From assembly GCA_047495785.1 (NCBI GenBank), contig JBLDXI010000032.1, positions 62,001 through 126,000 on the forward strand: a DNA stretch of 64,000 nt, given 5' to 3'. The stretch's first letter is position 1; the number at the start of each line of letters is the position of its first letter. Source of the stretch: Lepidodermella squamata (Eukaryota; Animalia; Gastrotricha). Below are positions 8,478 through 53,522 of this stretch, piece by piece. Under the pieces are notes generated by a model. That model was not told the origin of the DNA. It saw only the letters and a list, made by a program, of their open reading frames with translations, and ran no database searches. Both the position numbers and the translations under genes were made by a program.

Positions 8478-9024
8478 TTTTCGTCTAAACCTATATTGCA
8501 AATATCGCACCAACAGGCGAGCGTGACTGCAGCTGCAACAGCGAATGCGCAAAGAATGGTTTTCACGGAACTAGCTCATCTATTAATTAATGAGCCGCGG
8601 TCTGCAACAAAATGACGCTGCAAATTTATTTATCAATCATTCTCACGAAACGTGTTCGAACCAGGGTAATCGGTAGTAAAGCCAGGGCCATGCACCAGCC
8701 AATAGTGTTTCAAACTGAACTACCCAGTTCGATGTACTCGTTCCGCCACAAGCCTAGAGAAGAAGAGCCTTGCAGAGTGAAAATGGCAGCCGATGATCGG
8801 CAACCCGAAATCGTCAATTGTGCCCGTCTCAAGCTTCTTCCGGAGCTGTCTTACTGCCTGCGATGCCTCCAACCGTCTGCAGTCTGCACCGTCTTTTGTT
8901 CCTATCGTCTACCCGCCTTCCGTCGTAGGCCCGGCTGTCTCGTTTGCCACCCCTTACTTGTTATTTTCTGCATACCATAGCTGTCGAAGCAGAATAAATC
9001 GCCATCACTGTTTCGTAGTCATTA

Positions 9025-10649: not shown

Positions 10650-13600
10650 CACATTGACTGTTATATACACACATGTGTGTATAAGTTTACTATATAGTGC
10701 CCCATATACACACATGTGTGTATAGATCGCTATCTCCATTACCATGAGGGTGGGATGAGTCAAATTGACAGGTTTACCTAATTATTGGGCCTAGATCAAT
10801 AATCTGCCATCAGATTCGGACCATCACTCACAGAAATAGGTGATTTTAAAAATCGATAATTATCGATATCGATTTCGATACCAAAACAATTTTTCCGAAT
10901 TTTTTAATTATCACCACTGGAAAGAGCATATTTGATTTTACTTAAAACAGGTGAATGATCAACAATTAAACAAAATTCCATTTAGAGAAAAAATCGTCAT
11001 TTTTCAAGCTGATGTTTTATCCAGCATTTTTTACAGACGGCTATTAGGCATGTCTGACAAAATTCCGATGTCGCTTTTCTGAGGCCGAGTCTTTTACAAA
11101 GCTGACAATCTGTTCGTTTTCTTCGGCCATCAGGTCCTCGTTCTTCTTTCACCTTCCTTATATGGCGCTTCCCTTCTCTCAAATTATTGACATTTTCATT
11201 GGCTTCAACAAAACGAACGCGCTTCCTTCGAGGAAATTCGTTCTCGTTCTCGATATCACTGTCGCTCCCATTTCCTAAATCTTGCTGTTGCTGTTGACGA
11301 TCTGGCGAATGAAGGCGAGACGATTCCTCATTTCGCTTGTTATCGTCAGAGTGTACTCGGCTTTCGATAGTGGCAGGCTGAATTTCTCGGAATGGTTGAC
11401 GTTCGGGTCTGTTACTTAGGCGGGTGCTATCGAGATGGTGGCGACTTTCAAAGTTCTCACCCTCGTCCATCAGAGCTTCTAAAAAATAAAAAAATCGACG
11501 TGAAGCGTATTTTTGCAAATTTTTAATCGTACCTAGCTCTTCAGTTATGATTATAAAACAGTTAGGAGACTGGGGAATATTGAGCGTTTGATTCTGTCCG
11601 GTCAGCCAAATTGAATAGCAGTTGCATGCACCGTTGCAGTTGCAGCTCCAAGGCGGCTCTTGTCGAAGCGGTGCCTGCGGTGCTGTATTTGGAGGCGCAG
11701 AGTCTGTCGGGGTAGCGAAAGGCTCGTTTTGCCTTCGAAATGCCGACAGCGGAATTTCGTCCACAGCGGAAATATTCGGTTGTAGATTCAGCTGTGATCT
11801 TCTATCGTTCGCAGCTTCTCTTTCAAACACGAAACTGTCGTAAGTTCGCAACTGTAGCATTTCGCGGACTAAAATTTCACGGAATTGCCTGATTTGCATA
11901 TTTCTCCCAGTTATCTAAAGAAAGAAGGAATAAAATTGCGAATTAAAAATCACAAATAAATTGCAGATACCGAATTAAATAATAGCCACGAGTTAGATAC
12001 GGCTGATCCCAAAAGAAGCTCCACAACCAGCCTGACTTGCCAACGGGACGTACGCCGTAAATTGTGATGATAGGAATTTAACTGGTCGGATTTATCAATA
12101 CCGATTTTTGCTAAACTGTACTCGGTAACGGCATGAGGCTTCGACTTGCCCTTTCCATCGGTAACCAGATCAGGTTGACAAGCAGTGGTTATCATGTGGA
12201 CTTCGCGTTTGTCTTTAAACTTCATATAAGTGACTCCATGAGAACTTAACATTGCACTCGAGACGCAGCCTTTTTTTAAATTGGCACCGCTTACAGAGGT
12301 AGGCAAACCTCGTCGGTTGCTTCGAATCGTACCAGTACAATGCGTATTAACAGCCACCAGTGACTTCGCTAGAGTAACAGATGAATACCAGTTGTCCACG
12401 AAAAGATGCCGGCCTTGATTCAAAAGATTGCTGTTCCTCAGGAGTCGGCGAACCACATTTTCAGCGGCATTGCGGTCTTTCCGATCTGATTTCCCGGTAT
12501 ACGTTTCCACGTCGTAAACATACCCTTAAAAAAAATGTAAAAATTTAAAAAAAAATAAAAAAAAACTGAATTATTTTACCTGTTACGTTGCAGAGCTTGA
12601 AGAGTTTTATGCCGAACTTGTGTCGCTTGCCTTTGATGTACTGCTTCCAAAATAAACGACCGCGCCAGGGAACCATAGTTTCATCAATCACGATTCTCTC
12701 TTGAGGGATGTAGGACTCTCGAAATCGGCTGACTAGTTCTTCGATCACTGGACGAACTCGCCATAATCGATCGGTGTAAGGTTCCAAGTCGTTTTCATTA
12801 ATAGCCGTTAGATCTCGAAAGTCCCAGTTGGCGAGCAGCTCGAAAAACCGTGCCCGAGTAAAAAATCTCGGAACGACCTATTACGACATTATCATATGAA
12901 TCATAATTTTTTGCGATTTATATTCTTACCTGATTATGAAAAAGAGCGTCGTTCGACCAGTATTCATCTATTGTGGGATATTGAACAAGACCCATGTAGA
13001 GTAGCACGCCGAGGAAAAGTATTATTTCAAGCCTGCTCGTATTCTTCCAACCCGGCGATTTTCTTTCACCAGAAGCATTGGTGTTGGTGACAAAGATGTC
13101 GAGCAAATTTTCAGTCAGAAATTGGCGAAATACTGTAAAAGGGGTAACTTTTTCCGGAATATTGGTTGGCCCCGGCTCGGGAAAATTCTTATCGAATTTT
13201 TTCTGTTTCCCAGGGTCATGGTCGCCCCAAACTTCATTTCCAGATTCACGGATAATCCTGCTCAAAGGTTCTTCGTCGGATTCTTGATGCGCCCCCATTA
13301 GATTAATTAAGGGCTCATCATCGGAAATTCCACTGGGATTTTCGGAACTTTTGGACGTGGAACTCTCAGAATCTTCTGAATCTGACGAGAATTTCGTCAT
13401 ATCTATACTCGGCATTGAAGGGGTAACTGACGAAAGTCTAGTTTCAGCCCTGCTAACGGCGCCCCTGCCCCGTCCGCGACCTCGTCCGCGGCGGCCACTG
13501 CCTCTTGGGCGACCTCTAGGACGCTTAACCTGGGAGATGTTTGGTTCAAGACCTAACTCATCGTCATCTAAAACTTCCTCTTCAACCACTACGCTTGTCT

Positions 13601-14200
13601 TTCTTTTTCTGCCACTACCCTTTGGCCGGCCTCTTTGACGATTCAACTGCGTTTTCACCCGAGATGAATCGCTACCGTTGGATTCCAAATCAGAATCACA
13701 GTCCGGATTATATTCCGAATCTGTATCAGTGTCGGAAGATGAAGAAGGGGGCGGCGAGAAATCCCGCGCACGCTTTGTTTGTTTAGCTCTTGACATTGAT
13801 TGGTTGACAACAATGATACAAATTTCAAATCAAAATTTGAAAATGAACTCAACAAAACCAAATTCACACTTGTGTGAATAATATTCTAGAAAACGTTCAT
13901 TGCAACATATGTCGGCTCACCACATACACACATGTGTGTAATTCACACAAACATCCATGTACACCATACACACACATGTGTGTATCGTCTAGCACAAACA
14001 TACGCCATATACACACATGTGTGTATTTACAAAAATCGTTATTACGTAATAACCGTGACGATCCGGATTTTTTGATATGTGCCAAAACTTTTGTATTGAT
14101 GTCCTCTATCGATTAAGAAAAAAAAATGGGGGGGTGTCTGAAAAGTGCATTTTTGCAAAACCCCCAGGAGCCAGTGAGCCTTCGATCAACTGCCCCTTTC
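10650..14200 (-). mobile_element. piggyBac-family transposon (one terminus not found)
   Basis: Encodes a PGBD transposase. Palindromes of the TATACACACATGTGTGTATA type at 10664, 10705, ~13924, ~13966 and ~14008. Candidate left end TTAG|CACATTGACTG; right boundary approximate. Confidence 0.8.
10997..13796 (-). CDS. piggyBac transposase (PGBD4-like), spliced
   Basis: Catalytic motifs IVIDETMV, LFVDNWYSS and GIDKSDQ; KGKRHKFGIK; C-terminal CQLC...CQTC...CKKCW..H domain; N-terminal RGRP AT-hooks. Introns include 11479-11532 and 11915-11970. Confidence 0.92.
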
Positions 14201-14431: not shown

Positions 14432-17400
14432 TCAGATAGTACAATCAGGAGCCACGCAAGCTGAAAATGTAAAGTGGCATCCTGCAAGCGTGAAAGACTT
14501 ATCGCTTCCAACTTACTTTAGGTTCCTGATGCAAGAAGAATATGAAAGGAAATTTCGGAATCAATGAAAACAGATAATTTACTTGTAGAGCAATCAGCTC
14601 CCGTCCAGCCAGCAATGCAGACGCATTGATTTGGCGCAACACATGTACCTCGAAGATAACAACCCGCGGGGCAGGTAGCTATTATGGAGATAGAAGGTTA
14701 CCTCTGATTACACAGTGATCAGTGATAACTGAGAAGAAAACGTACGCGCAGTACAATCTGGAGCCATCCAAGATGCTGTGCAGGAACAGCGGTTAGGTCT
14801 GATGCACGTTCCTCCATTTGGGCAACCAGATGGGCAGGCAGCTATAGATTTGAAAGCTTTAAATGTGGCTTATAGACGAATGTTATTGTTACGAGTATCG
14901 CACAACACCCCTGTCCAGCCTGGAGAACAGGTGCAGTTCGGTGCAGTCGGCGCCAAGCATCTTCCTCCAATGCCGCATCCTGGGTTGCATACAGCTGTAA
15001 AGGACGAAAAGCTGCGAAAAGGTGTTAGAGATTGAAAATCGAAAATGGTATACGGGTGGTGCAATCCAAGCCGCCCCAACCCGTCTGACACGTGCAGCGA
15101 GAACCTCCCGAACTGTTCATATCTCCAACGCAAGTTTCAGATTGGCAGTTGGCAGCACAGGTTATATCTGGCGAGAAAATAATGTGAAGACATACAGGTA
15201 GGTAAACAGTAATTACGGTTTATCAGCTTGCACTGATCTTTAAGCTTTGAAAGCTGGCTCAAGGTCAGGGCTGCTTTGTGAATTGAGAAACAAGCGTACT
15301 TGTTGTTGTACGCTGTATTCAATGAACCGCCATTGGGAATTCGTCTGAGATTCATAAATTTTTCGATTCAAAAATACGTAAAATATACAATTTATGAGAT
15401 TTGACAAAGCAAGTTCAAGTTGTTTTAAGTTGTCAACTTGAATTGGGGATTGAGATGGATCCCCACTGTATCCTACTTAAGAACTTGCCTGGCTCCTAGA
15501 AATAGCGTGCGATGAGTGATCACTGATGTTGGAGCCACAGGAAGGCTGAATTGATCATCACAGACGATCGTGAACTGCGAACTACTAGCGTTCCAGATCA
15601 TGGCATAGAACCGCCACCCAGTTAGGTTTGTCGAAAAAGAAGCAGCCGGGCCAGAAGGAGAAGAGTATCCGAACAAGTCATTTGTTTGTAAATCGTTCCC
15701 ATTAGTTCCGCTATAGCGCCACATAGCCGCGAATCCAGTCGTTCCATCGCCGAACTCAAAAACAGGTCCTCGCACCGGCAGATTTGCGAACACTGAAATT
15801 GTGAAAGAAGATGTAGTAACATTCAGAGCGTCCGCTGTTATGTTTATCCAATTGCTAGCAGTGCCGGTCTCAACAGCAGTGTCCGCGATTCCAAATGGTC
15901 CGACTGCATTTGGGCAAGAAGTTGGCTGATAGGTTGCGTCCATGTCATTGCCAGATATGTCTCGATTCCGAAACAGACTGTTTAACGGCCAATATCCGAG
16001 GAGGCTGGGTAAGCTTGCTTGGTTGCTGATAAATTGATACAAATGATCTCGGCCTGTGGGTTGCCCTGAAACGTTATACGACAATGCAAAGCAGGTAATG
16101 TTTTGAATTTTGAAATATATCCGGGGTTAAAAAAAGACAATTTTCACGGAGGATAGGTTTAGCCTTTGGGTCACGCAATCGTCAAAGATTTCTCACTTGA
16201 ACTCTGCAAGATTTAATCGAAACCGAATGAGCTATCTTTATCTGAAAATGACACATAATGTTCAAGAGATTCTCCGAACTTCTACCCAACTAGACACTTA
16301 ATTAACTGTTCGCTGGCAAGAGTCAATGAATCTCACGTGAATTGCATGAAGCACCAGTCCAGCTGTTGAAACACGTGCAGGTGTTAGGGCCTGTGCATCG
16401 ACCGCCAACGCCGCAATCAGGGTCACACATGGCTAGTGAATAGTGTACGATGGACTCTGACCCTTCAATATTGGAGAAGAATGGGAACATACGAATGCTG
16501 CAGTCCAAATTTGTCCAGCCAGTTTGGCAGGTACAACGGTAACCTCCAGGGGTGGTAATATCGCCAACACACGTTCCAGATTGGCAATTCGACGAACACG
16601 TAATCTCTGCAATAATAAACAGGCAATAATAAACTGCAAAAATAATCATCCAAGGGTTTGATATATTTATTTACGATTTATCATTTGACACTGACTGCGA
16701 AGGAGAGCCAGTTGCGCTGTATTGAATGCTGTTTTATGAATCGAAAAGCACGCGTATTTGTTGTTATACGGCCCAGACAACGCGTTATTGGGACTCGGAA
16801 GATTCCTGATAATGGAAAGGTTGGGGTATCATGGAACTCGTCTAATAGCCGGATGAACCGACCTTGCTCCCAGGTAAAGGTATTTATAAGTATCGAAAGA
16901 CGAAACGGTAAGAGGCGAACTGATTTGGTCGTCGCATGCTGTTGTCATTTTCGAAGTGCTAGCGTCGAAAACTTGGGCAACAAAGCGCCAGCCGGACATG
17001 TCGCAGTTCTGAATTATTTGTGCACCTTGTCCTGGGCCGGCGTAGATCGCATTTGGCTGCATGATTGTAGTGTCGGCTACAAGCCTCCAGAGAAGAGCGT
17101 AATTGTTTGTCGCGTTTTGGAATTCGAAGATCGGACCTCTTTTCGAGGTGTAGACATAGACGGCTAAGGTAACCGATGACGAGCCAATAATTAGAGCGTC
17201 GGAGGTTATGTTTAGGAAGTTTCCGGCGTTGTTAGCATGCGTTTCGATAGCTGAACCTGGTTGTCCAAAGGGGCCCTGTGTAACCGGAGAGGAGGTCGGC
17301 TGTGAGACAGCATCAATTCGGTTGCTTGAAATATCTCGCAGACCGAATAGCGAATTAAGCGGCCAATAGCCTAGGATGTTTGTCAAATTCAACTGATTCA

Positions 17401-17482
17401 CCGCATACTGGGAACCATAGTCCTGCCCATTCAACTCATGCGCTACAAGCACGGTGATGAGGAATAGAAATAGGTTTTCCAT
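14432..17482 (-). CDS. Secreted LamG/ConA-like-EGF protein copy 2 (SP-LamG-2xEGF-LamG-4xEGF-short Cys tail)
   Basis: Signal peptide MENLFLFLITVLVAHELNG; two GYWPLN...GPFG...WRF domains; six EGF exons. A phase-1 splice TCA C|GTGAG to CAG|GG CAA joins the two halves. Ends TCVAPDCTI*. Confidence 0.85.
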
Positions 17483-19028: not shown

Positions 19029-21907
19029 TCAAAGGGCGCAACCTGGAGCGATGCAAGCTAATAAATAAAACACGATCAACTGCAAGCAAGAAAAAGAAAA
19101 TTTGAATTCGAACTTACCCTGAGTTCCTAGGACAAAAGAAACAGCAAAAAAAGAATTACTAATTGATAGATAAATTAAAAATTACTAGTTGAGCAATCAG
19201 CGCCCGTCCAGCCAGCATTGCAGACGCATTGATTGGGGGCGGCACAAGTACCCCGAAGGAAACAACTTGCCGGACAGATGGCTATTGATGAGATTGAAGT
19301 TCAGTATCATAGATAGATGTAAGAAAATTCAAATTAAATTTTAGAGCTGCGAGGAAAAATTTACGAGTAGTACAATCGGGGGCCATCCAAGATGCTGCGC
19401 AGGAACAGCGGTTAGGTCTGATGCACGTTCCTCCATTCGGACATCCGGATGGGCAAACAGCTGGGAAATAGAAGGCTTTGCAACTGTATGGATTATTAAA
19501 GTATCGCTTACGGGTATCACACAACACCCCAGCCCAGCCTGGAGTACAAGTGCAAGAGTTCGGCGCCAAGCATCTGCCTCCAATGCCGCATGCTGGGTTG
19601 CATACAGCTGTAAAGGACGAAAAGCTGCGAAAAGGTGTTAGAGATTAATAATCGGCAATATAATACGGGTAGTACAATCCCAGCCTCCCCAGCCAGTCTG
19701 ACACGTGCAGCGAAACCCTCCTAAACTATTCAGATCTCCAACGCAAGATTCAGCCAGACAGTTAGTAGGACAAGCTATTTCTGGCGAAGAAATTGTTGAT
19801 GTATAAATGTTAGGCAGAAAGAAATTCACGGTTTATCAGCTTGCATTGTTCCTTGAGCTTTGAAAGCTCGTTCGATGTCAGAACGGTTTTGTGGATCGAC
19901 GTACAGGCGTATGTATTGTTAAACGCCCCATTGAAACTAGTTGAAGGTATTCGCCTGAAAATGGACCAAATTAGTCGAATATCTCAAATCTCAAATCTGT
20001 GACTCTATTCTTGGTATGGTTTACATTAAAAAGCTTATTAACTCGCCTTGCTCCCAGGTAAAGAGTGGATGCCGTATATATAGCCGATATCTTCAGGGGA
20101 ACACTGAATTGATCGTCGCAGAGAATTGTCATTTGAGAGCTGTTTGCGTTCCAAATCATAGCGTAGAATCGCCACCCCGTCATATTGGCTTGCAAATATT
20201 TCCAAGGGCCATTGTAAGAAGAGTAGCCGACCAAGTCGGTTGGTTGTAAGTCGTTTCCATTAGTTGTGCTGTAACGCCACAATGACGCAAATCCACTGGT
20301 CCCATCGCCGTACTCGAAAACTGGGCCTCGCCGTGGCAAGTTTGCAAAGACAGTAATTGTGAAAGAAGTCGTTAGGACGCCTGATGGGATATTTATCCAA
20401 TTTCCAGCGGTTCCAGTCTGTAGCGAAGTGTTCAGTTGCTCGTAGGGTCCAATGGCCGCGGGGCAAGGGGTTGGCTCAAATGTCGCGTCAATTCCATTGC
20501 CAGATATGTCTCGATTCCGAAACAGAGCGTTCAGCGGCCAATATCCGAGAAGGCTAGGCAAACTTGCCTGGTTCGTGATAAATTGTTGGACATTATCTCG
20601 GCCGGACGTCAATTCTGAAAACACCAGCGGAGCTTTAAAACTATAATTGCTAGCACTTATGCTCGAAGATAGGCTAATATTGAAGGATTGGGCTATGGTT
20701 GGGAAAGAAGACTTTTCTTCCCAGAAAGGAAACTTTATTTGCCTAGTCTAACTATCTATCAAGGGTAAAAATTAAAAATTAGTTAATTCTCACGAGTTGT
20801 GCAGAGAGAACCAGTCCAGCCATTATAACAAGAACAGGTATTAGGAGCAGTACATCGGCCGCCAACACCGCAGGTAGGATCACAAACGGCTGATCGGAAC
20901 GGTTAAATACTACAATTCGAACGTAATTATCGTTTTGAATGGGACATACGAATGCTGCAATCCCAGTTTGTCCAACCGAATTGGCAAGTGCATCGATAGC
21001 CTCCTGGAATTAAAAGATCCCCAACGCATGTCCCAGCCTGACATTTGGTCGAACAGGTGATTTCTATAGTGGTATTATAACGGATTGAACATAACATTGC
21101 AATACTTGAAAGCGTCTTACGATTGATAATTTGGCATTGATTTCGAAGAAGAGCCAACTGCGCTGCGTTGAGCGCTGTTTTATGTATTGATAAGCAAGCG
21201 TATTTGTTGTTGTACGGCCCAGACAACGCGTCACCTGGAAGTTTCCTGTCAAGGCAGAGAATTTATGATTATGAGGTGATATGTAATACTAACCTCGTTC
21301 CAAGGTAAAGGGTCCTATAAGTACTAATCAACGAGGTGGTAAGAGGTGAACTTATTTGATCGTCGCAAACTGCTGTCATTTTCGTAGTGGTAGAGTCGAA
21401 AACTTGCGCAACAAAGCGCCAACCAGACATGTCGCAGTTCTGAATTATTTCGGACCCTGGGCCGGGTGAGACGTAAATAGAATTTGGCTGCATAATATTG
21501 GTGTCGGACACAAGCCTCCAAAAATGAGCGTAATTGATCGTTGCGTCCTCGAATTCGTAGATCGGACCTCTTATTGAGGTAAGCACGAAGCCGGCTATGG
21601 TTACTGATGATGCGCCAACATTCAGAAGGTCCGAAGTTATGTATAGGTAATTTCCGGTGCTGTTTGCGTGAGTTTCGATCGCGGTGCCAGGCTGCCCAAA
21701 GGGACCAACGGTCACCGGCGAAGAAGATGGCGCAGAAGTCGCATGGATTAGATTTGCCGAAATGTCTTTTAGTCCGAACAGTGAATTCAGTGGCCAATAC
21801 CCAATGATATTAGAAAAATTCAACTGGTTAAGGGCGAACTGAGTGCCGTAATCTTGTCCCCGTACTTCATGCGTGGTGATTAATAGAAGGATAATGTGTT
21901 GAAGCAT
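19029..21907 (-). CDS. Secreted LamG/ConA-like-EGF protein copy 3
   Basis: Signal peptide MLQHIILLLITTHEVRG; same exon structure and phases as copy 2; ends ACIAPGCAL*. Confidence 0.85.
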
Positions 21908-23019: not shown

Positions 23020-24745
23020 TTAGTTCTGAATCGATTTGGATCGCAGCGAAGCCAATACGGACGAATGGCCCATTTTCAAAGCCAAAGAGAACGCAGTTTC
23101 ACCATTCAACTGCTTCAAATTGGCATCTGCCCCACTTCGAAGCAGCAATTCAACCACATCAGCGAATCCCCGCTCAGCCGCGCAAATCATAGCGGAATGG
23201 CCCATTCGGTTACGAATATTCACGTCAGCGCCATTGGTGATAAGTAGGGCTACAATATCCCGATAACCTTGATCGGCAGCCAGAATAATCGCAGCGCCAG
23301 AATTCACATCAGCCCCTGTTTTGATCAAACGTTCTGCAATTTCGAATTGACCCCGATACGCTGCGTAAGCAATCGCAGACCATTCGCTTGAGTTCGAAGC
23401 TGTGATGGCTGCTCCGTGGTTCAGAAGAAGTTCAACAACTGAGAGATTCCCAGATCCAACTGCTCGAAGCAAAGGCGTCATTGCGTTAGCGTCCCTAGCG
23501 TTTATATCGGCGCCATTTTCTAATAATATAGATGCGATTTCCCGATGACCAGACTTCGCGACGAAATGTAAAGGCGTCCATTGACATGAATTGCTTTGAT
23601 TCACCAAAGCGCCGTGTTGTAGCAGGAGACTCGTTAAGGTTCGGTTGCCGTTCCTAGCTGAAAACATCAGACTCGATACTCCAGCAGTGTCAACATCGTT
23701 AACATTTGCCCCTTGAGTCAGAAGTTCCAAAACTACCTGACCTGTAAACGGAAAAGCTTTTTTGAAATGGATAGTCCATTAAAAAATTTCAGCAAGACTA
23801 ATGATATTAGGTTAACAAAGCTTTCTTAGGCTTAACAGAGAACAGCATTTATTCATCGATTTTAGGGACTTCTAGAAACTGGGAAACCTTACCGCGATTT
23901 TGGCATGTAGCCAGTAGCATTGCAGATTGACCGTGATTATTCTTGACATGAACGTTCGACCCCGATATGAGCAGCTGCCTCACAACATCTAGATGTCCAT
24001 TTTCACTCGCCAACATCAGCGGCGTGTTGCCATCATGATTTCTCGCATCAACATCAATCCTGTACTTCAGAAGCAACTGTATCACTTTGGAATGCCCATT
24101 TTTCGCGGAGAGATGGAGCACGGAGCCGAAACTGCTAAGCTTCGTAGGATCCGCGCCATTCTTTAGAAAAAGCTCGACAAGTTCCGAATTTCCTTTCTCC
24201 GCCACTATCGCCAGAGGACTAAAGCCGTCGAAATCTGCTTGGTTCACTAGGGAGTAATCGCTTCTCACCAGAATCTCAGCCACCTCGAAGAAAGAATTTT
24301 CGGCGGCAAAATGGAGAGCGTTTCTCCCACAGTTGTTCTCAGAGCTGAGATTAGCTCGGCTTTTGATAAGCAATCTTATAAGATCTGAATGGCCATTAGA
24401 TGCAGCGAGAATCAAAGCTGTGGAACCGAAATCATTCGCCGCGTTCACATCTACCCCGCGATCGATTAAAAGCTTGGCGACATTCAACCGACCATTCTCC
24501 GCCGCGAACATCAGCGCCGTCCAGCCGTATTTGCTGGTCGCATTTATATTCGCTCCCTTCTGAAGTAGCAAATCAACAGCATCTCGATGACCATTAGCCG
24601 CTGCCCACATAAGAGCTGTTTTGCCGTAGGATTCCTCATCACCAATATCAACTTGACCGGCAGCTTTTTCTAGGCACAACCGTAACGCTGGTAAATCGCC
24701 GTTTTTTGCAGCTGTCATAAAATAAGCCGCAGTCTGGCGTAGCAT
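23020..24745 (-). CDS. Ankyrin-repeat-only protein (~524 aa, ~15-16 repeats), two exons
   Basis: Two ankyrin ORFs join in frame through the phase-1 intron 23742-23892 (CGC G|GTAAG ... TTTACAG|GT CAG), giving ...QNRGQVVLELL... Confidence 0.88.
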
Positions 24746-37541: not shown

Positions 37542-37596
37542 TTACAAAATCGCACCGGCTGCTATGAGAATGTCTACAGTTTTTTGTTTGTCTTCA
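37542..37596 (-). other. Orphaned original 3' end of the kinase-ankyrin gene
   Basis: Removing the EnSpm and one CA copy gives ...DVSD-EDKQKTVDILIAAGAIL* in frame. Confidence 0.9.
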
Positions 37597-37890
37597 CCCA
37601 GTCAAAAGCCGCTAGGCCTGTGGTAGGCCTAGAGGGTAATTTCCCGCTTTAGGCCTATGGTAGGCCTACGTTTGTCCCTTTTTTTAGGCCTAGGCTAGGC
37701 TAGGCCAGGCCTGTAGTAGGCCTAGGCTATTATAAGCTAGGCCTGTACTAGGCCCAGGAATTAAAAAGTCGCCAGAATTGCTGCCGTTCGTCTGTTTTTA
37801 TTTGTACTATTGGTAATTTCTCATATTGTAAGCGTCGTGAAAATCACTAAGACGAACAAGATAGTATATATATGTATATGCACTAGTAAG

Positions 37891-40612: not shown

Positions 40613-43315
40613 ATGTCCAAAACGTCTGAACGCATAATGAAAGGAGATGAATTCGATGTTAAAACTAAGCGTCGCAGGCAGGCAAAGTCAGGGAAAAAGG
40701 AAGACAAGGCAGAGTTAGCTGTGAAGGACGCCGCGTCACTCCCATCGACATCAACCGCGCCCATTTCCTTGCTTGCAGCGCCTAGCAGTTTACTAACGGA
40801 TTCTCATTTCGGCGGTGTTGATCCCAGTCTGTTACCTGAACCGCATGATCTTGATGAGTAAGCTTTCAAAATCCATTTTTTACAGTAAATTTGTATTGTC
40901 AGTGTAGGCCTGATGACGAGTTCGTTGACTGCCCTACGAGTGCCCCTGGTGATGATGATCCTCCTGATTACACTTTTATGAATTACGTTGACGAGTGGGT
41001 TTTTTTAATTATTTTTAGTATAAAGCAAAACTTGAGATCTTTGTATTTTTCAAGGGAAGATGGTGATGCTCCTGAGATGCCAGTTGAGGAACCCGAAGAA
41101 GGAGATGAAAACGTTGGAAGCGGTGAACCGGAGTGGCTGAAGAACCTCAACAACACTCCGTTCTACAATGGGTGTCAAACGTCCGCTGGCGCCGTGTTTC
41201 TAATGGTACTGGCATTCTGGGTGAGGTACAATTTGCCATGGAAAGCTTTCGTCGACCTGCTCTCGATATTCGACTCAATCGCCCCTGTTCGCTATTTCGC
41301 GCTTGTGTTGGGATCGATTCCGACTCTGCAAAAGCGGCTGTTTGGCAACACTTCGGAGTCAAGTTTCGTCAAGTTCGCGACCTGCAAGTGTCAAACTGAC
41401 AGTGGAACCTGGGATGCTGCACAGGTTCCTTGGTTTGAAAAATGTGAAACTTGCAAAAAAGGCGGCATTGGCGTTTACTTGTACTTGGAAAACTTCGTCC
41501 GAAGAGTCGCTGAGCTCAAGAACATCACGACCGACACAACGCTGAAGGTGAAATGGTTTTTCGACGGATTCACGCCGTATGGCCGGAACACTTGGCTTTT
41601 GATATGCCGATTTCCTGGTGTTTCCATCAAGTTTCTCGCAATGGCTTGGGTTGGTCTGACTCATCCGCCTTCATGGGTTTTACGACCATTCGTCCATGAA
41701 ATGCAGCGACTGTTTCACACCGGGGTTCGATTGGCAAACGGCGCGGTCGTCAAAGTTGCTCATGGTGTTGGCATTCTGGACAGCCCGGCGCGAGCATTGG
41801 TGCTTGAGCAGAAAGGTCATGGCGGCTATTGTGCCTGTCCTTTCTGTCTAATTTATGGTCAGCGTGATAGTACGAATTCGAAAACCGTATATCCTAATGG
41901 TAAATATCTACCGCGAACGAACGAAAATTGGCGACAATCCGCCCAGAACGCTACCGTTACGGGCCAGATTGATGATGGTATAAAGACATGGGCTTGCATT
42001 TTGGACATTCCAAATATGGATCCTTCGAAAGATGCTCCTGTCGAACCGATGCATAATATCTACCTTGGTATTGTGAGGTACATGCTGCTGTCATTCTGGC
42101 TAAATTCAGCTTCCGAATTTTACATAACCAACTGGCGCGAGATGGACCTTCATGTCGACTTCGAGTACTCTAAGGGCCCGGCTTCATTCTTTCCGCACAT
42201 CAAGAATGGAAACGAATGCAATGTTGGTAATTGGAATGCGCAGCATTTAATGACGTTTCTGCTCTGTCACGGTGTTTTAATTTTGAACACCTTCCTTCAA
42301 ACTCGACCGCGCGAAGCTCAACTGTTTCAGAAGCTCAGCAATATAGCCTGGCTTTGCCTACATTCGAAGCCGAACACCGCCGTCATTACGCGAGAAAGCA
42401 AAAAATGGGTCATCGACTACGAGAAAATTTTCGGGGTCGATGCAATGACCTACAACGTGCACATTTTCTCGCATATTGGCGAGTGCATCGAACGTCACGG
42501 CCCTCCATGCGAATTTTCCGCCTTTACATACGAAAGTTTCATCGGGGTGACAAACCGGTAATGAAGTATTATTGTTATTGAAATTAAAAGTCGTTTGATT
42601 AATGCAAAAAAGTTTCATTTCTCATAAAAAATATAAGAAATTAGAATTTAGAATTCTAGCTTAGAAATTCTCATAAATAAGCATGTAAAATTTAATTTTC
42701 CTTTTCAGATCCCTTCAAAGTGCTTCTAACCTGGCAGTTCAAATAGCGAACCGAGCGATGGCAGTTAATTTTTTACATTGCGTTGCCAAAGGTCAACATC
42801 ACCTGCAACTGTTACAGCACCTGCTAAGATCTGACCCCAGTTCAAAGTCAACTTCTTACTCGTTCGCCAATGGCTCGAATAGTGGCGTGTTGTTTGGTCG
42901 GGCTAAGTCGAGGCCGGTGCCTATCAACCCAGGCGAATTCGACGACGTATTTCCAAGTGATGGCAGTCATACTACCTGGTCAAAATTCAGCAAAAGAATT
43001 AATGATGACCTGAGCGCCATTTACTTTGCTGATACTGTTGTCTTCATCCCGACGCTGCAAGACCAGTTTTTCAAGATCAACTATTTCTGCCTCGGAGATG
43101 ATGGATCGTCCGTCTACGCCTCACTTACTGAGATCAAGACTAAAGTCGCTTTCGGCCAGCACATCCGCAAAGTACTCGAGCCGAAGCGACATCCTGGCGA
43201 ATCGTTTTTGAACGTGTTCTCCGTTGAAGTTTTCAGGTGCTACGAATTCGGCTCGAATGCCGACAAATTCGTAGTAAACATTCCGAATTTAGTCGACCTT
43301 CGTGATATTAATTAA
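40613..43315 (+). CDS. EnSpm/CACTA transposase (Tnp2-like), spliced
   Basis: FFDGF, ILDSPARA, KGHGGYCACPFC, PVEPMHNIYLG, TYNVHIFSH...HGP and SAFTYESF. Intron 42558-42708 joins in frame to the 3' exon (RSLQSASNLAVQIANR). Confidence 0.93.
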
Positions 43316-45875: not shown

Positions 45876-46984
45876 CCGTTGTTGCTGAAGGATTTCAATT
45901 ATGTTTGTATCAAATTTCGATTTGAGGATCAGTATTTGATTGTATTTCTCGCCAATATTCTGAAACGTGAGTGAACTGCTTTGTTGTCGGAGATTGAGAC
46001 TGAGAAGCTGAATCAAACTAGAGATTTTTCGCTGAAAAATTTCCTTATTCGTGAGAATCTCCTTTTCAATATATTTGTCCTGAGATTTTCAGCGTAATAT
46101 TTCTGAGTGAAATTATAGTTCAATTTGGAAAAAGTCGAATTCACATGTAATACGTGTTGTTGGTATATATTTAATTCGTCTCAAAACGCTCATCATCGCT
46201 TCTCGATTTGTTATATAATACTTTGCTACACCATAAACATTGCTCAATATTAACTCGAATGAAAGGATGGTAATTTGTTCCGACTTTTCACGCTAAAAAA
46301 TGTCAAGGCATCGTTTTTGTTTCATTTTTGTAACCTCTCTTATTGAAATATTGGTATTATACCATATTATTGCCATGAAACGTATATGTGCCTTTTCATC
46401 GGAATGGAAAATTGTTTTAACCAAAATATATCACCGACTATCTCTGTTTGTAATTTCAAACATGGTTTTTACGTCAACGTTCTCGCCATTATATTATAAA
46501 GTCATTATAATAAAGTGCCACATTGCTGATCAAACTAACGCCTGTTGTTTTCTAAAGTTAAATCGAATAATTCTATTGGAAAATCATAACTTTTTATTCA
46601 TGTAAGCGGCTAAACTTTTCCATCACTGCTATTTTCCAGGTTTAGACGCCTGCTTCAGAGTACCTTTGCGGTCCTGGGTTCTGTCTTACGATGACTATTC
46701 GATGTGTTCGATTAACAGCAGTATTCTACAAGTGACAACGATTATGCAATGACCGACCATCTTGCTTGGCGAATCGTCTGGAACCTGTTGCGAAATAATA
46801 GGTAGGAAAATGTCTTTGTTATCTTAGATAGCCATTTATTTGATGACAGTTTGCCACCTTAATTCACAGGCCTAGCTTAGGCCCAGAAGTTTAGCTAGGC
46901 CTATTCTAGGCCTACTTATATTACATAGGCCTGTGCTAGGCCTAGACCGGGTCTAGGCTCGGTTCAATTAGGCCTATGCTAGGC

Positions 46985-49900
46985 CTACGAGCCTAGCCTA
47001 GGCCTAGCGGCTTTTGACTGGGCATCCGACACATCGTCATCGCAATTCTGGGCTGCGAACAAGGCTGTCCAGCCAGTCGACGGAACTCTGTAATTGACAT
47101 CGGCCCCGAGCACACGTGTGAGCAAGTCAACAACATCATAGCGACCTTTAAAGGATGCCCCCATGAGAACTGAACACCATTTTTCAGATGGAGGATCAAA
47201 CGAATTTCCCAGTTTCATTGCTATTTCAGTTTCATAGTCCAAAGCATTGATATCTGCTTTAAATTGAGAAGTTAGGAGTTTCACAATATCGGCGTGGCCC
47301 CAATAAGCGGCAACGTGTAACGGCATAGTTCCATCTTCATCTTCTACATTAACGTGGCAGTTTAACTCCCCTGCAAGCATTCTGACGACTTCCGCGGAGC
47401 CATTCTGAGCAGCGATATGCAACGGCGTCCAGCCCTCCTTATCTGAAGCATTGACGTCACACTTGAACTCCCCTGCAAGCATTCTGACGATTTCTGCAAG
47501 GCCGTTCTGAGCAGCTAAGTGTATCGGCGCCCAGCCCCTGATATCTCGGAAATCAACGCCGCAGTCGAACTCTCCTGCAAGCAGTCTGACGACTTCCGTG
47601 TGTCCATTCTGAGCAGCGATGTGCAACGGTGACAAGCCATCCTTCTCAAAGACGTTAACGTCGCAGTTGAACTCCCCCGCTAGCAATCTGACAATTTCCA
47701 GGTGTCCATTCTGAGCAGCGATGTGCAGTGGCGTCAAGCCATCCTCAGTAGGAGCATCAACGTCGCATTTGAACTCCCCTGCCAGAATTCTGACGACCTC
47801 CCTGTGACCATGATGAACAGCGATGTGCAACGGCGTCCAGCCATCGAAATCAGAAGCATTGACGTTGCATTTGAACTCTCCCCCAAGAATTCTGACGATT
47901 TCTGCAAGGCCATTCCCGGCAGCAATATGCAACGGCGAACAGCCATCCCTCGCAAAAGCGTTAACGTCGGAGTTGAACTCCCCCGCTAGCATTCTAACGA
48001 TTTCCAGGTGTTCATTCTGAGCAGCAATGTGCAACGGTGTCCAGCCTCTGTTATCCAAGGCAATAACGTTGCATCTGAACTCCCCAGCTAGCATTCTGAC
48101 GACTGCCGTGTTTCCATTCTGAGCAGCGATGTGCAACGGCGTCAAGCCGTTCTCCTCAGGAGCATTAACGTCACATCTGAACTCCCCTGCTAGCAGTCTG
48201 ACGACTTCCGTGTGTCCATTCTGAGCAGCGATGTGTATCGGCGTCCAGCCATCTTGCCTTGAGGTATTAATGTTGCAGTTGAACTCCTCTGCAAGCATTC
48301 TGACGACTTCTGCATGTCCCTCCTGCGCAGCGAAGTGTATCGGCGTCCAGCCTTCCTTCACAGAAGCATTTACGTCGCATTTGAACTCCCCTGCCAGTAG
48401 TCTGATAACTTCCGCGTGTCCCGCCTGAGCAGCGATGTGCAACGGCGTCGAGCCGTCTAACCCAGGCGCATTAACGTTGCAGTTGAACACCCTTGCTAGC
48501 ATCCTAACCACTTCCACTTGTCCCTTCAGGACAGCGAGGTGCAACGGTGGCGTCGAGCCATCTTTCTCAAAGGCATTAACGTTGCAGCTGAACTCCTCTG
48601 CAAGCATTCTGACGACTTCTGCATGTCCATTCTGAGCAGCGATGTGTATCGGCGTCCACCCTTTCTTCACAGAAGCGTTAACGTTGCATTTGAACTCCCC
48701 TGCAAGCATTCTAACGACTGCCAAGTTACCATTCTGAGCTGCTATGTGCAACGGCGTCCAGCCATCCTCGTCAGGGGCATCAACGCTGCAGTTGAACTTC
48801 CCTGCAAGCATTCTGATGACTTCGGTGTGTCCATTTTGAGAAGCGATGTGTAGTGGTGTCCAGCCATCCTCCGCAGAGGCATTAACGTCGCTGTTGAAAT
48901 CGTTTGCTAGCATTCTCACAACATCAACGGAGCCATTCAGTGCTGCGAGATGCAAAGGGGTAAATCCCATCACCATTGCACTGTTCACTGTGATGTATTC
49001 GTTTGCGAGAAGTCGAACCACTTCGGCCTGACCCTCCCCAGCTGCGATATGCAATAAATTCATTTTGCGCCCATCCTGCTTTTGCACGTTTGCCTTCATC
49101 GCACCTGCTAATAATTTAAAAACCTTAGCGTGGCCATTCTTGACTGCTGCCCAAATTGGAGTTTCGTCGTTGTTTGTTGCAGCATCGATGCTTTCGTTCG
49201 AAGCCGTTCCAAGGATATTAACCGTACGTAAATTGCCGCTATTCGCAGCAATGTAAATGGGAGTTCTTCCCAATAGGTCCTTAGACAGCGGATTAGCATT
49301 GAACCTATTTACCAATAGTTTTGCTATCTCATCATGTCCTTCTTGTGCAGCTAGAAACAATGGGGTCACGCCTTCGCTGTTCTCGCAGTTAACGTTTATG
49401 TTCAAAGCCGTGGTTGATAAAAGCGATTCGATTTCTTCGACTTTGTTCAGTCTGATAAGGCGAAAAAGCAACTACATAAAATGATAGCAATTCATTGATG
49501 ATCAAGGAAAATTGTGGATTACTTTTTCTCCCGCGCTCAGGTCCGAGATTGCAAGATTTCCATCGGAAGCTGTTTTCATGAGCTGATTGGCGATTTGGTC
49601 CTCTGTTAACGAATTATCCGTTGCGTTAAGCAAAGCTAGCGGCGAGTCGCGCCTCGAGCTGGTTTTTTCACGAATCATCCCCATGATCGCGTTTCGGAAT
49701 TTAATCGAATAACCACGGGAATCATCAAAGTTTTTCGGATGATTGCTGTAATAGTGGATTGCTATAAGTAATTGGGTGAATTGCGCGAAGGCTTATCGAT
49801 TGAAACTTACAAAAGGATAGCCAATGTAGAATCAAACTGAAATTATTTTGTATTAACAAACATTATTTCCACCCAGAGAATTAGCTTACAGGCATGTAGA

Positions 49901-52330
49901 AATTTGCCAACTCGAACAAAGTGACTCCCAAAGACCACCAGTCGCTCGCGTGCGAGTGATCTACCTTTGCAAATAGTTCAGGAGCCTTGTAAAGCTGTTT
50001 ACCGTGTCCCAAGTTTTTAACTGGTAGCTGCTTGCTTCTTTGCGATCATTGTTACATGCGGATATTGCATCAAAATCGATCCTACCTCTCGTAAACCTTC
50101 GCGAACCCGAACCCTCCAACCTTGACAGAAGTGCCGTTGTTGAGAAAAATATTCTTGGGTTCTATTGCGCGATGGAGGATTCCGCTTTCGTGCAGCTTGG
50201 CCACCGCAGAAGCAAGCTGTCGTGACCAATCCATCAACAAACTTTCGGGAATAGGCCCAGCTGAATTGTTCTTGTAATCATTCAAATTTCCTTCCGAACA
50301 ATATTCCATCACCAAATAGTAAATTGCACCTGCAGAGCCATGTTCTTCAAACAATTAAAAGAGAAGGAATTATGCGGCTATATAGCAAATGGCATTTGAC
50401 CATTTTTGAGTCATCTCGATTAGGGTGGCAGATGATTATTTGAATTGGGATTCCCCCGATTGTGGAACGGGATACAGTGACATGACTTACGCACTCGATG
50501 CGCGGTAGTACGATATAAGTGCCTCTGACTCACCCTCGAATGATCCGTAAATCGAAATGATGTTTGCGTGTGATAAATCCACGAGTTTAAGATTCTAGAC
50601 GTTAAAACATCTCTGCTTATATGCATTACTTTTCATAAACTACGAAGCTTTACCTCGTCTCGGCTTATATTGATTAGTCGCTCTGCAAAATCAAGATCTT
50701 TGTCATAAATCCGGTGAATCAGACTTAGGTTGTAAGCCTTGACAACATAACGGGCAACGTTTTTGTATCGCCTGCATAGCATTGTCGAGCCAAAGGTGCC
50801 TCTTCCGAGCTCCTTTTCACGCTTGAACTCGTGGATTGAGGAAAATAATTCCAACTTCCGAACTTTAGCTGCGGGCTCTTCGGTCATTTCCATTTGTCTA
50901 ATGAAAGGACAGCTTAGGAGAGCACCAGCGTCAGCTCGATTGGAAGGGTCTTTAACGAGCATCGAGAAAACAAAGCAATGATACTCATTTGAATAAGGCC
51001 GGTCTTTGGCAAAGGATTTTGGTTCTTCCCTGAAAATAAAAAAATCAACATAGTGTGAGCGAAGCGCCAAAGCAACCACTTTGATGACTCATTCGATAGT
51101 ACTTGAAGTAGCCTAACATTATGATGTAGTACGCGTTCAGCTTATTCCAGCACTGATCCTACTGATCGTAATTTGCATTTACGTTAAAGGGTCGAACGTA
51201 GTTCACTTTACGCTCACTTGTCTGCAAATAAGCAATTTCAAGACACTCTCCGCTAATTCGACTTGTCTTGCTTGGCTATTCAAATAAAGCGATTCATAGC
51301 TAAATCTAATCCATAACTAGAATTAACCTGCTTTCATGCTTCAAACTTACTTGATGATATCAGCTTGATTATCAAACTGAAAAAGAACTACATCTATTTA
51401 TTGGGCTCGCGGGACTGATTTGCTTACCGGCAAGTAGAAATTAGCCAGCTCGAATAAAGTCACGCCAAGCGACCACCAGTCGCTCTCCTTTGAATTCTTG
51501 CTACTGAACGTTTCAGGCGCCATGTACAATTTCGTGCCAAAAGCAACTAACATGCTCGCCGAACTTGGCCGAAGGCAAATAGTTTCTTTTCTCATATGCT
51601 TCCTGGAAACTAAAAAGACTCACCCGCCATCTATGTCAGGGGATTTAGCTAAGCCGAAATCGCCAAGTTTCACAGTCCTATCGTCCATGCACAAAAATAT
51701 GTTAGCAGGCTTGATGTCCCGATGCATCGCGCCATGACTGTGAATCTTATTGACAGCGGACACCAACTGGCAAGACCATTCGTGCAAGAGACACTCTGGT
51801 ATTATCGCTTGGAATTCTTTTTTCCGTTTGATGTAATTTTCCAAATCGCCATTTGAACAATGCTCCATCACCAAGTAGTAAATTTCATCCTCCAGCAGTT
51901 TCCAGTGTTCTAGCCCTTCAACCGTTTGTTGCCAAAACTCTATCATAGAAAAAATGTTGTGAGCGATTGGGTGTGTCGCGTAATAATACCTGTAAAAGCG
52001 CCTCGGATAGCGACGATGTTATCATGTTTCAAGCTCTCAATTAATTTGTGCTGAAGAAAAATATCAGATACCAATGCAATTGGAAAGTATATGCCTTACC
52101 TCTTTGCAGCTCAGATCTATTAGTTTCAATGCGAGAGCCACTTCGCCATCTTTATTTCGGTATTTCCTTAGAATCTCGTTGAGATTAACAGCTTTAACCA
52201 CATAGTTAGCTAAATCGCCATCTTTCCGTCGACATAGCCATGCACTACCAAAGCCACCTTTTCCTAACGTTTCAATAATTTTGAATTCGCTTATTGAGGT
52301 GAAAGCTGGCGCCATTTCGGCTGAATTCAT
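46985..52330 (-). CDS. Tandem kinase-pseudokinase-ankyrin repeat protein (NEK-like kinase domains, ~23 ANK)
   Basis: Kinase 1: [33 protein letters not shown]. Kinase 2: [34 protein letters not shown] phase-0 intron 49472-49522 links to the 828-aa ankyrin exon. Confidence 0.85.
47280..48960 (-). repeat. Coding tandem repeat, ~102-bp (34-aa) ankyrin units, ~17 highly similar copies
   Basis: Consensus [30 protein letters not shown] is visible at both DNA and protein level. Confidence 0.92.
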
Positions 52331-53522
52331 GTTCGTATTAGTAGCACGTGCCTTTAAAGGCAAACACATGTTGCATTGTTTCAAAATAATAAAGCACCGG
52401 CCACGGTTAGGCTTTGGGCACAACAAACGAAATACACAGTTTGAACATCGTCCGGTAAGCATATATAGATAGTAAATACAGTAGATCTGACACGCTAGTA
52501 CATTCATGTGTGCCGAGATGACTCATCATGGAATCACGGATGACTCATCTTTTTGCTTTTTGGGTCGGGTGCTGGAAGAAATCACTTGATGAGGGTAATA
52601 ATCTGCGTACTGCAAAAAGTGAGCAGCAACCTAACCTCGCGGACTACCACGTTAGAATTCAAATTCAGTCTCTTAGGCACTGCCACTCGAGTAAGGAAGA
52701 TTTGATGTCAAAGAGACAGTTGTTCAAGTATAGCAATTCAAATGGAGATTCCGTTCGTTTAAAACTTTAAAACGATGCAAGTTGAGAATACCACCAGTCA
52801 CAAAGGAAACAATAGCTGAGCGCAAAAATACAATGAGTAGAAGTTTCATCCGAATGTGCTGCCGAATCTTTGAAAATAGTTGACCGCCAAATGTTGACTA
52901 CAGACTACAGGATGAGTTGTAAATACTCGAGTCGTATATCAACGGATAGAGCGTAAAAGAGTAACATTTTGAATGAGAATTTCTTCGAGAATTATGCCAT
53001 TTGATCACCCAAATTTGATTGTTGATACAATAGTAATCGTTCTGCCCTCCTATTATGAGCAGGCTGTATTTCATTCAAAATCCTACCCCACCTGCCCCGG
53101 TCGCTACGGAGCTCAATGCGCATCATCAGCCTGCATTAAGCATTCTATGTTGTTATTCAGTGTTCAATAGAACTATTGCATATGGCCAATTCATATTATC
53201 CCTATTGACAGTGTTTAGCATAACCTTTAACAGGACACAGTTACGATCGACGCAAACTTAGTAAATTATTACATATTCTGCGTCAATTTTTATAGAGCAT
53301 TTTAAATGTTGGCACAGCATAAATTTCGCCGTTTTTCCCCAGTGGCAAGAAGAAACTTAGTTGATGCTGCAGTAGCGCCGGGGGAACCTATGACAATTAC
53401 AACAACTGATATGTAGCAAGTTCCTTTCGAGGATCACTTGGATTACACGAATCAGACCACCGATGTGACCAATCAGACCAATCAGACCCGGTGTAAACAA
53501 CCTGCCGGGCAGGAAGTCGTTA

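Follow-up and report, generated by a model that had tools for sequence, protein, structure and literature searches.

A tandem kinase-pseudokinase-ankyrin gene of Lepidodermella squamata, candidate for a docked kinase of a lineage-specific family

On the minus strand of the window, the whole 64,000-nt (64-kb) stretch of Lepidodermella squamata DNA analysed here, lies what is probably an intact gene for a soluble, cytoplasmic, docked kinase of ~1448 residues that is regulated by its own pseudokinase domain and belongs to a multi-copy, lineage-specific family. Pairs of a kinase with a pseudokinase are well known, as are fusions of kinases to ankyrin repeats; the two are combined here in a single chain through duplication within the gene, and no description of this combination of kinase, dead kinase and ankyrin repeats was found in animals.

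Gene structure and splicing

Between 52330 and 46985 on the minus strand, 12 exons with GT-AG borders (11/11 introns) form one open frame of 4347 nt (1448 codons, no internal stops), which begins at an ATG at 52330 and ends in a stop codon at 46985-46987, both on the minus strand. The limits given in the first-pass annotation (46985-52330) are therefore correct, and its view that scattered ORFs splice into one gene is supported. The exons and associated elements are:

52100..52330, minus strand: exon 1 (231 nt, phase 0-0; from sequence and ORF), with the start codon and the Gly-rich loop GKGGFG, beta3 Lys (VVKA) and alphaC Glu of kinase 1
51990..52050, minus strand: exon 2, a 61-nt micro-exon with GT-AG borders, encoding the beta4 strand of kinase 1
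51624..51939, minus strand: exon 3, hinge, HRD and GDFG of kinase 1 (Pfam Pkinase, E 1.3e-20)
51428..51563, minus strand: exon 4 (start revised), end of the activation loop, APE and alphaF of kinase 1 (Pfam Pkinase)
51351..51376, minus strand: exon 5, 26-nt micro-exon FDNQADII (near-identical insert in an X1 contig)
50654..51029, minus strand: exon 6, end of the kinase 1 C-lobe, a linker of ~25 residues and the start of kinase 2 (Gly-rich loop, beta3 Lys, alphaC Glu) in one frame, based on ORF 50633-51079, a Pfam Pkinase N-terminal match at residues 85-122 and alignments to exons 1 and 11
50534..50594, minus strand: exon 7, 61-nt micro-exon of kinase 2, equal to exon 2 in length and phase
50086..50344, minus strand: exon 8, hinge, HRA and GGFG of kinase 2 (Pfam Pkinase, E 2.3e-16)
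49890..50034, minus strand: exon 9, APE and alphaF of kinase 2 (Pfam Pkinase), with the acceptor at 50034 or 50037, a one-codon uncertainty
49811..49836, minus strand: exon 10, 26-nt micro-exon FDSTLAIL
49523..49745, minus strand: exon 11, diverged end of the kinase 2 C-lobe and linker to the repeats (ORF; GT donor at 49522)
46985..49471, minus strand: exon 12, ankyrin repeats followed by the stop codon (828 codons, ~2.5 kb; Pfam Ank_2, E 2.5e-177)
46896..47030, unstranded: short repeated element rich in the palindrome TAGGCCTA
46835..46840, minus strand: AATAAA, a likely polyadenylation signal read directly ~150 nt past the stop

Each exon was used as a separate query in Pfam and database searches; Pkinase was matched by exons 3, 4, 8 and 9 (above the cut-off for exons 3 and 4), and exon 11 gave no Pfam match. 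The GC content of the window is ~42-43%, in line with the 43% given in the L. squamata genome paper. A scan for bacterial promoters and terminators upstream of the gene, irrelevant to an animal gene, returned nothing.

RNA-like contigs at least 99% identical map onto the locus, and contigs of run X1 have introns 3, 4 and 5 spliced out; that X1 is an RNA run is a guess, and the spliced contigs show mismatches and so possibly derive from a paralogue. Intron 3 is a 60-nt GT-AG intron (51564-51623), an X1 contig joining 51563 to 51625 at the cost of a single mismatch. Use of the closest in-frame acceptor downstream of exon 3 would leave a 21-nt intron, which is too short and was rejected, the RNA-like contig giving 60 nt. 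An X1 contig also runs from exon 4 through a near-identical 26-nt insert into exon 6, which supports exon 5. Among the RNA-like contigs no read spanned introns 1, 2 and 6-10 or the intron between kinase 2 and the ankyrin exon.

The tandem arrangement of kinases 1 and 2 does not depend on any splicing inference, since exon 6 (51029-50654) spans both. Only one in-frame GT-AG junction, the intron 49472-49522 of the first-pass annotation, would link the ankyrin exon to exon 11, and this 51-nt gap is of the size usual for introns of the gene. The frame of the ankyrin exon becomes open precisely at the AG acceptor; its first 124 codons lack Met, yet they already encode Pfam ankyrin repeats, so that the frame must join an upstream exon; that of exon 11, in turn, reaches a stop six codons beyond its GT donor.

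At the 3′ end, the last ~13 codons and the stop codon derive from the repeated element, as does part of the 3′ UTR. The 8-mer TAGGCCTA occurs in 11 copies in two clusters, against 0.33 expected, and the second cluster (37590-37760) aligns with the element.

The paired kinase domains and the ankyrin array

Kinase 1 is complete, its Gly-rich loop, beta3 Lys, alphaC Glu, HRD Asp, catalytic-loop Asn, DFG Asp and APE all being present in exons 1, 3 and 4, and it looks active by the motifs that define an active eukaryotic protein kinase; the HRD and DFG on which it had been called intact are read as claimed. Kinase 2, in the same way, has the HRA and GFG previously ascribed to it and an open frame. 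It retains the Gly-rich loop, beta3 Lys, alphaC Glu and APE but has lost the catalytic Asp of HRD and the metal-binding Asp of DFG, and by the loss of these residues from a kinase fold it classes as a pseudokinase.

The two domains are 48% identical overall (exon 1 and the C-terminal part of exon 6, 49%; exons 8 and 3, 52-54%; exons 9 and 4, 63%) and have five intron positions in common, each in the same phase, rather than the three originally noticed. These lie after the alphaC Glu, after the 61-nt exon, ~8-10 residues past DFG/GFG, after F-Y-x-P and after the 26-nt FD exon. Shared positions and phases that include both the 61-nt and the 26-nt micro-exons, together with the level of identity, support the proposed origin of the pair by internal duplication. 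The duplication is old, as synonymous sites between the domains are saturated (pS 0.79; pN 0.36). In the alphaF segment 18 of 20 residues are identical despite eight synonymous changes, so that selection, and not recent gene conversion, has preserved kinase 2. Variants of the kinase 2 exons in allelic or paralogous contigs differ by ~10 synonymous and seven non-synonymous changes.

Exon 12 encodes tandem TPLH-type ankyrin repeats with a 34-residue period, of which 21 are clear and anchored, plus two or three degenerate ones; the earlier count of ~23 is refined to 21 clear repeats with degenerate caps at both ends. Pfam Ank, Ank_2 and related models match up to 18 separate stretches of the exon, and at the DNA level the tandem period is 102 nt (15.4 copies, 74% match). 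The repeat consensus is G-W-T-P-L-H-I-A-A with a conserved Phe and Cys, and the TALM motif is absent. Residues that vary among the repeats occupy the usual binding-surface positions. Their dN/dS is 1.03, at positions picked for their variability, as against 0.24 in the framework, and a value of ~1 at such positions does not amount to positive selection. Apparent skips in repeat number in DNA contigs of run X2 proved to be whole 102-nt repeats once inserted letters were allowed; they were discounted and are not used as evidence, because short-read contigs collapse repeats.

Relatives, kinase class and proposed function

With single-exon queries, no close relative was found among 1.84 billion proteins, in a word-indexed protein search or in metagenome contigs, in agreement with the first-pass annotation, which had recognized no named animal family. 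An exhaustive HMMER search with exon 6, which holds the kinase 1-kinase 2 junction, gave two matches with E no higher than 0.001. These were rejected as relatives: each is an unrelated protein with several kinase domains and lacks ankyrin repeats. The ankyrin exon retrieved only generic ankyrin proteins in the word-indexed search (identity at most 44%); two kinase-bearing matches among those listed were set aside, having the order ankyrin-then-kinase with a single C-terminal kinase. The ankyrin ORF itself gave no record in an exact look-up. The word-indexed search with exon 3 detected one family-like fragment (P0123 / L001; 55% identity), in which exons 1-3 are fused and the position of intron 3 is the same. 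Two metagenome scans yielded nothing closer than 49% over most of the query, and one match of 61% over a 44-residue segment. In the window, tblastn with all exon pieces detected no second kinase copy and only an unrelated ankyrin gene at 23020-24745, and the words kinase and ankyrin are absent from the L. squamata genome paper. Many contigs 90-99% identical to the gene are present in a DNA run of the same organism, which points to a multi-copy gene family, probably restricted to its lineage.

Kinase 1 appears to be of the Ser/Thr type, from the NEK/eIF2-alpha-kinase neighbourhood of the 'Other' group. The best solved relative of exon 3 is NEK7 (59 bits, versus 53 bits for PKR/GCN2), that of exon 1 is GCN2 and that of exon 4 is STK32A/PKA, while exon 8 is closest to GCN2, TYK2 and NEK1; since different exons point to different kinase families, a 'NEK-like' assignment is weakly supported. 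The 60 best solved relatives of the core exons include no RIPK, nor do IRAK, Pelle or RLK chains figure in the top 60, and the kinase type, as far as sequence can tell, differs from the RLK/Pelle or RIPK type of the analogues cited in the first-pass annotation.

With the kinase beginning near residue 15 and little sequence following the repeats, no signal peptide or membrane segment is apparent. By analogy with other kinase-pseudokinase pairs, the dead kinase 2 may be an allosteric partner of the live kinase 1 or present it with a docking face; the ankyrin solenoid would dock the protein to partner proteins or a cell structure, and phosphorylation by domain 1 would depend on the binding partners of the repeats and of domain 2. 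Partnerships in trans between NEK kinases and ankyrin-repeat proteins are known, namely NEK8 with ANKS6 and INVS, and NEK7 with ANKS3 (PMC10166553). The gene is most economically read as coding for a docked, pseudokinase-regulated kinase.

A rival reading, in which the gene encodes a NEK-type kinase targeted to the cytoskeleton or cilium, with ankyrin arrays, as in Giardia, placing many active and dead NEK paralogues on particular structures of a heavily ciliated animal, is possible but unlikely. Among solved structures NEK7 is the nearest to the catalytic-core exon, conserved modules pair NEK kinases with ankyrin proteins, and the Giardia Neks have an N-terminal kinase, often dead, and 1-26 ankyrin repeats that affect localization (PMC3218828), but exons 1, 4 and 8 have GCN2, STK32A/PKA and GCN2/TYK2 as their best solved relatives, and the repeats lack the Giardia TALM motif.

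A sensor/switch or immune-receptor role, drawn from JAKs and plant tandem kinases, would be a guess. It has been considered, as a decidedly doubtful alternative, that the gene encodes a diversified intracellular receptor for immunity or recognition that has converged on the plant tandem kinases, in which the ankyrin array or the dead kinase would bind, or imitate, the target of some microbial molecule and binding would free the active kinase. The order of kinase then pseudokinase and the duplication origin are those described for many plant tandem kinases (PMC8761531), the family has multiple copies and is confined to its lineage, and the variable repeat residues lie where binding surfaces usually do. 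Against this, dN/dS at these positions is only 1.03 although they were chosen as variable, leaving positive selection unsupported, the kinase is of another type than RLK/Pelle, IRAK or RIPK, Pfam detects no death, TIR, NACHT or other immune signalling domain, and multi-copy kinase-ankyrin families exist in Giardia without an immune role (PMC3218828). The broader proposal that a small spiralian lineage independently evolved animal intracellular receptors built like plant tandem kinases, the dead kinase acting as bait or switch and the variable ankyrin solenoid as recognition surface, rests on the same analogy and is a little more doubtful still.

It is very improbable that this copy, from a family with rapid turnover, has recently been disabled or lacks a function. 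Its last codons and stop codon do come from a repeated element, but 12/12 exons have open frames and canonical splice sites, the frame of kinase 2 has survived even as synonymous sites became saturated since the duplication, and RNA-like contigs at least 99% identical lie on the locus. Least probable of all is the wrongful joining of a tandem-kinase gene to a separate ankyrin gene, for although no read was seen over intron 49472-49522 and a random junction would be in frame one third of the time, the ankyrin frame starts at an AG acceptor with no ATG in 124 repeat-coding codons, the exon 11 frame closes six codons past its GT donor and the 51-nt gap fits the gene's usual intron size.

The family could offer a natural system in which to study the effect of a dead kinase on the live one to which it is linked in cis. 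The locus is a clean, intact exemplar, its splicing partly confirmed, for annotating further copies in the genome, and if the family is large and variable it would represent a second, independent NEK-like/ankyrin expansion, after that of Giardia.

Comparison with known systems

In JAK and GCN2 a dead kinase domain lies beside a live one in the same chain and regulates it. There the pseudokinase comes first, whereas here the kinase does, and the other domains of those proteins (FERM-SH2 and HisRS-like, respectively) include no ankyrin repeats, in contrast to the array found here. RIPK4 and ANKK1 resemble the present protein in placing ankyrin repeats behind an N-terminal Ser/Thr kinase within one cytoplasmic chain, but they combine a single RIPK (TKL) kinase with ~10-11 repeats, as against two kinase domains, neither with a RIPK among its best solved relatives, and ~23 repeats.

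Plant tandem kinases such as Rpg1 and WTK1/Yr15 are likewise soluble, with a kinase followed by a pseudokinase that often arose by duplication of one domain, and sometimes add an integrated domain (PMC8761531). The present gene shares their architecture, with two tandem kinase-like domains and no NLR or receptor domains, but they are RLK/Pelle-derived and defined by immune function, whereas the gastrotrich protein has another kinase type (no RLK/Pelle among the best 60 solved relatives) and a long ankyrin array. Plant tandem kinase proteins are an analogue and not a homologue.

The Nek-ankyrin expansion of Giardia, a large, fast-evolving and organism-specific family, has the same order of kinase then ankyrin repeats (Manning et al., 2011; PMC3218828). 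Its members carry TALM repeats after a single Nek domain, whereas here an active-dead pair precedes 34-residue repeats with a conserved Phe and Cys and no TALM, and as Giardia is an intron-poor protist any resemblance is convergent. In the NEK8-ANKS6-INVS and NEK7-ANKS3 modules (NEKL-MLT in C. elegans; PMC10166553), ankyrin-repeat proteins localize and activate NEK-type kinases; these are separate polypeptides conserved across animals, whereas the present gene, likened to them without a claim of orthology, joins the corresponding parts in a lineage-specific cis fusion.

Gene organization and transcripts

The gene occupies the minus strand from an ATG at 52330 to a stop codon that ends at 46985, as placed by ORF positions, reading of the sequence and a script check of borders and phases. 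After correction of intron 3, 12 exons with GT-AG borders (numbered in the reading direction) join into a single frame of 4347 nt, or 1448 codons plus stop, with introns of, in order, 49, 50, 60, 51, 321, 59, 189, 51, 53, 65, and 51 nt. The Pkinase model scores above the Pfam cut-off on exons 3, 4, 8, and 9, and Pfam ankyrin models match in up to 18 stretches of the last exon, which has 828 codons. Exon 6 (51029-50654) is one ORF that runs from the end of the C-lobe of the N-terminal domain (kinase 1) through a short linker into the second domain (kinase 2), of which it encodes the Gly-rich loop, beta3 Lys and alphaC Glu; since both domains are spanned in one open frame, the tandem-kinase arrangement is independent of splicing inference. 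The gene outlined in the first-pass annotation is thus recovered as 12 GT-AG exons in one frame, with small corrections to intron 3 and the repeat count.

Two sequencing runs provided contigs for comparison. Run X1 (2015, putative RNA) yielded 148 contigs, with 50 reaching ≥99% identity, and run X2, which accounts for 87% of sampled words, was taken to be DNA from the same organism because its contigs continue through introns. In one X1 contig 51563 is joined to 51625 with one mismatched base, removing a 60-nt GT-AG intron (51564-51623) and leaving a DFG-to-APE stretch of ∼30 residues, an ordinary activation-loop length; a 21-nt intron after exon 3 was rejected as impossibly short, the X1 contig having the 60-nt intron instead. 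Another X1 contig passes from the end of exon 4 through a 26-nt insert, differing from exon 5 by a few bases, into exon 6, so that the 26-nt micro-exon is used in the gene itself or in a very close paralogue. Among the X1 joints listed, none crosses the remaining introns, including the one between kinase 2 and the ankyrin repeats. An inverted join within exon 6 (50826-50949, opposite strands) in one X1 contig probably arose as an artefact of library preparation or assembly. Summed X2 contig depth reaches ∼90x single-copy at 52471-52650, immediately 5′ of the start codon, and ∼27x at 51078-51276 in intron 5, which suggests that high-copy repeats, probably transposon fragments, flank the gene and sit inside it.

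The kinase pair

Kinase 1 carries GKGGFG, VVK, the alphaC Glu, HRD, DFG and the subdomain XI Arg. Kinase 2 retains GRGTFG, VVK, the alphaC Glu, the catalytic-loop Asn and APE, and has lost both catalytic aspartates (HRA, GGFG), so that this motif reading bears out the original description of an intact domain followed by a dead one. An exon-by-exon alignment of the two domains spans 278 columns at 48% identity, and their core exons (3 and 8, encoding the hinge, catalytic loop and DFG/GFG region) score 84 bits against each other, whereas the core exon scores 59 bits against the best solved kinase. Each of the five kinase 1 introns has a same-phase counterpart in kinase 2, and exons of exactly 61 and 26 nt are common to both; these shared features show an internal duplication rather than fusion of two different kinases, as had been proposed from three intron positions where phases and exon lengths now give five. 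Alignment extends even to the initiator region of the first kinase unit, which the start of the second unit matches, a hint that a whole coding 5′ end was duplicated.

Between kinase 1 and kinase 2, pS is 0.79 (synonymous sites are saturated) and pN 0.36; the alphaF segment has accumulated 8 synonymous differences yet matches at 18 of its 20 residues. Because silent sites are saturated while alphaF is conserved, the similarity has been maintained by protein-level selection and not by recent gene conversion; the kinase 2 frame has remained open for as long as it took silent sites to become random. Over the kinase 2 exons, the best-supported differences, taken from allelic or paralogous contigs with codons read at variant sites via the exon map, comprise ∼10 synonymous and 7 non-synonymous changes, a crude sign of purifying selection on this domain.

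Homology searches were run exon by exon. Among solved structures, NEK7 is closest to the kinase 1 core exon, with PKR, GCN2, and NEK1 close behind; exon 1 is nearest GCN2, exon 4 nearest STK32A and PKA, and the kinase 2 core nearest GCN2, TYK2, and NEK1. As the nearest kinase varies by exon, the assignment goes no further than a divergent Ser/Thr kinase in the neighbourhood of the NEK and eIF2-alpha-kinase families.

Ankyrin repeats and proposed function

Twenty-one repeats can be anchored on the motif P-L-H-I-A-A, with a degenerate cap at each end, in agreement with the earlier estimate of about 23. Their period is 34 residues rather than 33, with a conserved loop, G-E-F-x-C-x-V-N-A, after helix 2 (46988-49471, minus strand), and at the DNA level 102 nt (15.4 copies, 74% match). 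The loop Cys is present in 14 of 16 core repeats; its conservation would give ∼20 cysteines lined up along the solenoid. Variable repeat positions are 33, 34, 1, 2, 4, 15, 16, 27, and 29, which constitute the usual ankyrin binding surface. Diversifying selection among the repeats was not detected, dN/dS being 1.03 at the variable positions, even though these were chosen for variability, and 0.24 in the framework. A separate ankyrin gene at 23020-24745 (minus strand) has two ORFs (298 and 236 codons) encoding ordinary 33-residue repeats that are only ∼30% identical to those described here, and no kinase nearby.

The predicted product is a soluble protein in which an active-looking kinase is paired with a conserved dead copy of itself and joined to a long ankyrin solenoid. 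In the favoured reading, the solenoid would dock it to partner proteins or cell structures, and kinase 2 would regulate kinase 1 or present substrates to it. The first-pass annotation suggested that the gene may encode an immune receptor, and the kinase-pseudokinase order and duplication origin, both common to plant tandem kinase proteins, would speak for this role. The plant proteins are polyphyletic, their definition combining architecture with immune function (PMC8761531). As the kinase type differs from theirs and the variable repeat positions have a dN/dS near 1, we consider the role unlikely. Of that interpretation, the single kinase-pseudokinase-ankyrin gene formed by internal duplication stands, but the kinase type does not match the plant analogues cited.

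That the kinase exons and the ankyrin exon are two separate genes, as the lack of a listed X1 joint between them would allow, is very improbable, given that the GT donor of exon 11, at 49522, is followed six codons later by a stop, the open ankyrin frame starts precisely with the AG acceptor 49472-49473, the 51-nt gap is an intron size typical for the gene, splicing here keeps the reading frame (phase 0 on both sides), and the first 124 codons of the ankyrin frame lack an ATG yet match Pfam Ank_2 (E 2.6e-21), which would leave a standalone ankyrin gene without a start codon for its first four repeats.

Genomic surroundings, relatives and known systems

Window GC is like the 43% of the published Lepidodermella squamata genome. 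The window contains 11 occurrences of the palindromic 8-mer TAGGCCTA (0.33 expected), every one of them in one of two clusters, 46896-47030 and 37590-37760, which can be aligned and have the lead-in CCCAGTCAAAAGCCGCTAGGCCT in common. One cluster provides the last ∼13 codons, stop codon and 3′ UTR of the kinase-ankyrin gene; the clusters look like a small repeated or mobile element at gene 3′ ends. Other features include the following.

Other coding features in the window
6150-6767, 8076-8552, 15473-16084, 16829-17482, 19971-20624, 21269-21907, minus strand: at least six paralogous ORFs of ∼200 codons, common motif L-L-G-Y-W-P-L-N-x-L-F-x-x-R-D-I-S-x-N
11950-13796, minus strand: long transposase-like ORF resembling piggyBac type, with an acidic/Ser-rich N-terminal ORF
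40891-42561, plus strand: long ORF, transposase-derived in sequence appearance

The first group is probably a tandem family of secreted lectin- or pentraxin-like proteins, and the two long ORFs look like transposase-derived genes.

When exon 6 was searched exhaustively with HMMER against 1.84 billion representative proteins, two matches at E up to 0.001 were returned, both rejected as unrelated multi-kinase proteins without ankyrin repeats. The ankyrin exon retrieved only generic ankyrin proteins (≤44% identity); the only two kinase-bearing proteins among the matches listed have a single, C-terminal kinase. Metagenome scans gave nothing close, a second copy is absent within the window, and the L. 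squamata genome paper mentions neither kinases nor ankyrin repeats. With the core exon as query, one family-like relative was found outside the window, in a Logan contig of SRR21279729 (L001, 1-1205), whose kinase ORF has 55% identity over the core; exons 1-3 are fused there, without introns 1 and 2, and the ORF ends at a GT at the post-DFG position of intron 3. Of 320 X2 contigs, 267 have 90-99% identity, as would fit close paralogues in the genome, although this number is inflated by the repeats.

Among known systems, RIPK4/ANKK1, JAK, and GCN2 each have only one feature in common with the gene. NEK kinases are placed and activated in trans by ankyrin-repeat partners, NEK8 by ANKS6 and INVS and NEK7 by ANKS3 (PMC10166553), which makes a cis fusion of kinase and ankyrin functions plausible. 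The nearest described parallel is the fast-evolving Nek expansion of Giardia, in which an N-terminal and often dead Nek domain precedes 1-26 ankyrin repeats that form a subtype of their own, although the present gene differs in its live-dead kinase pair and its repeat subtype.
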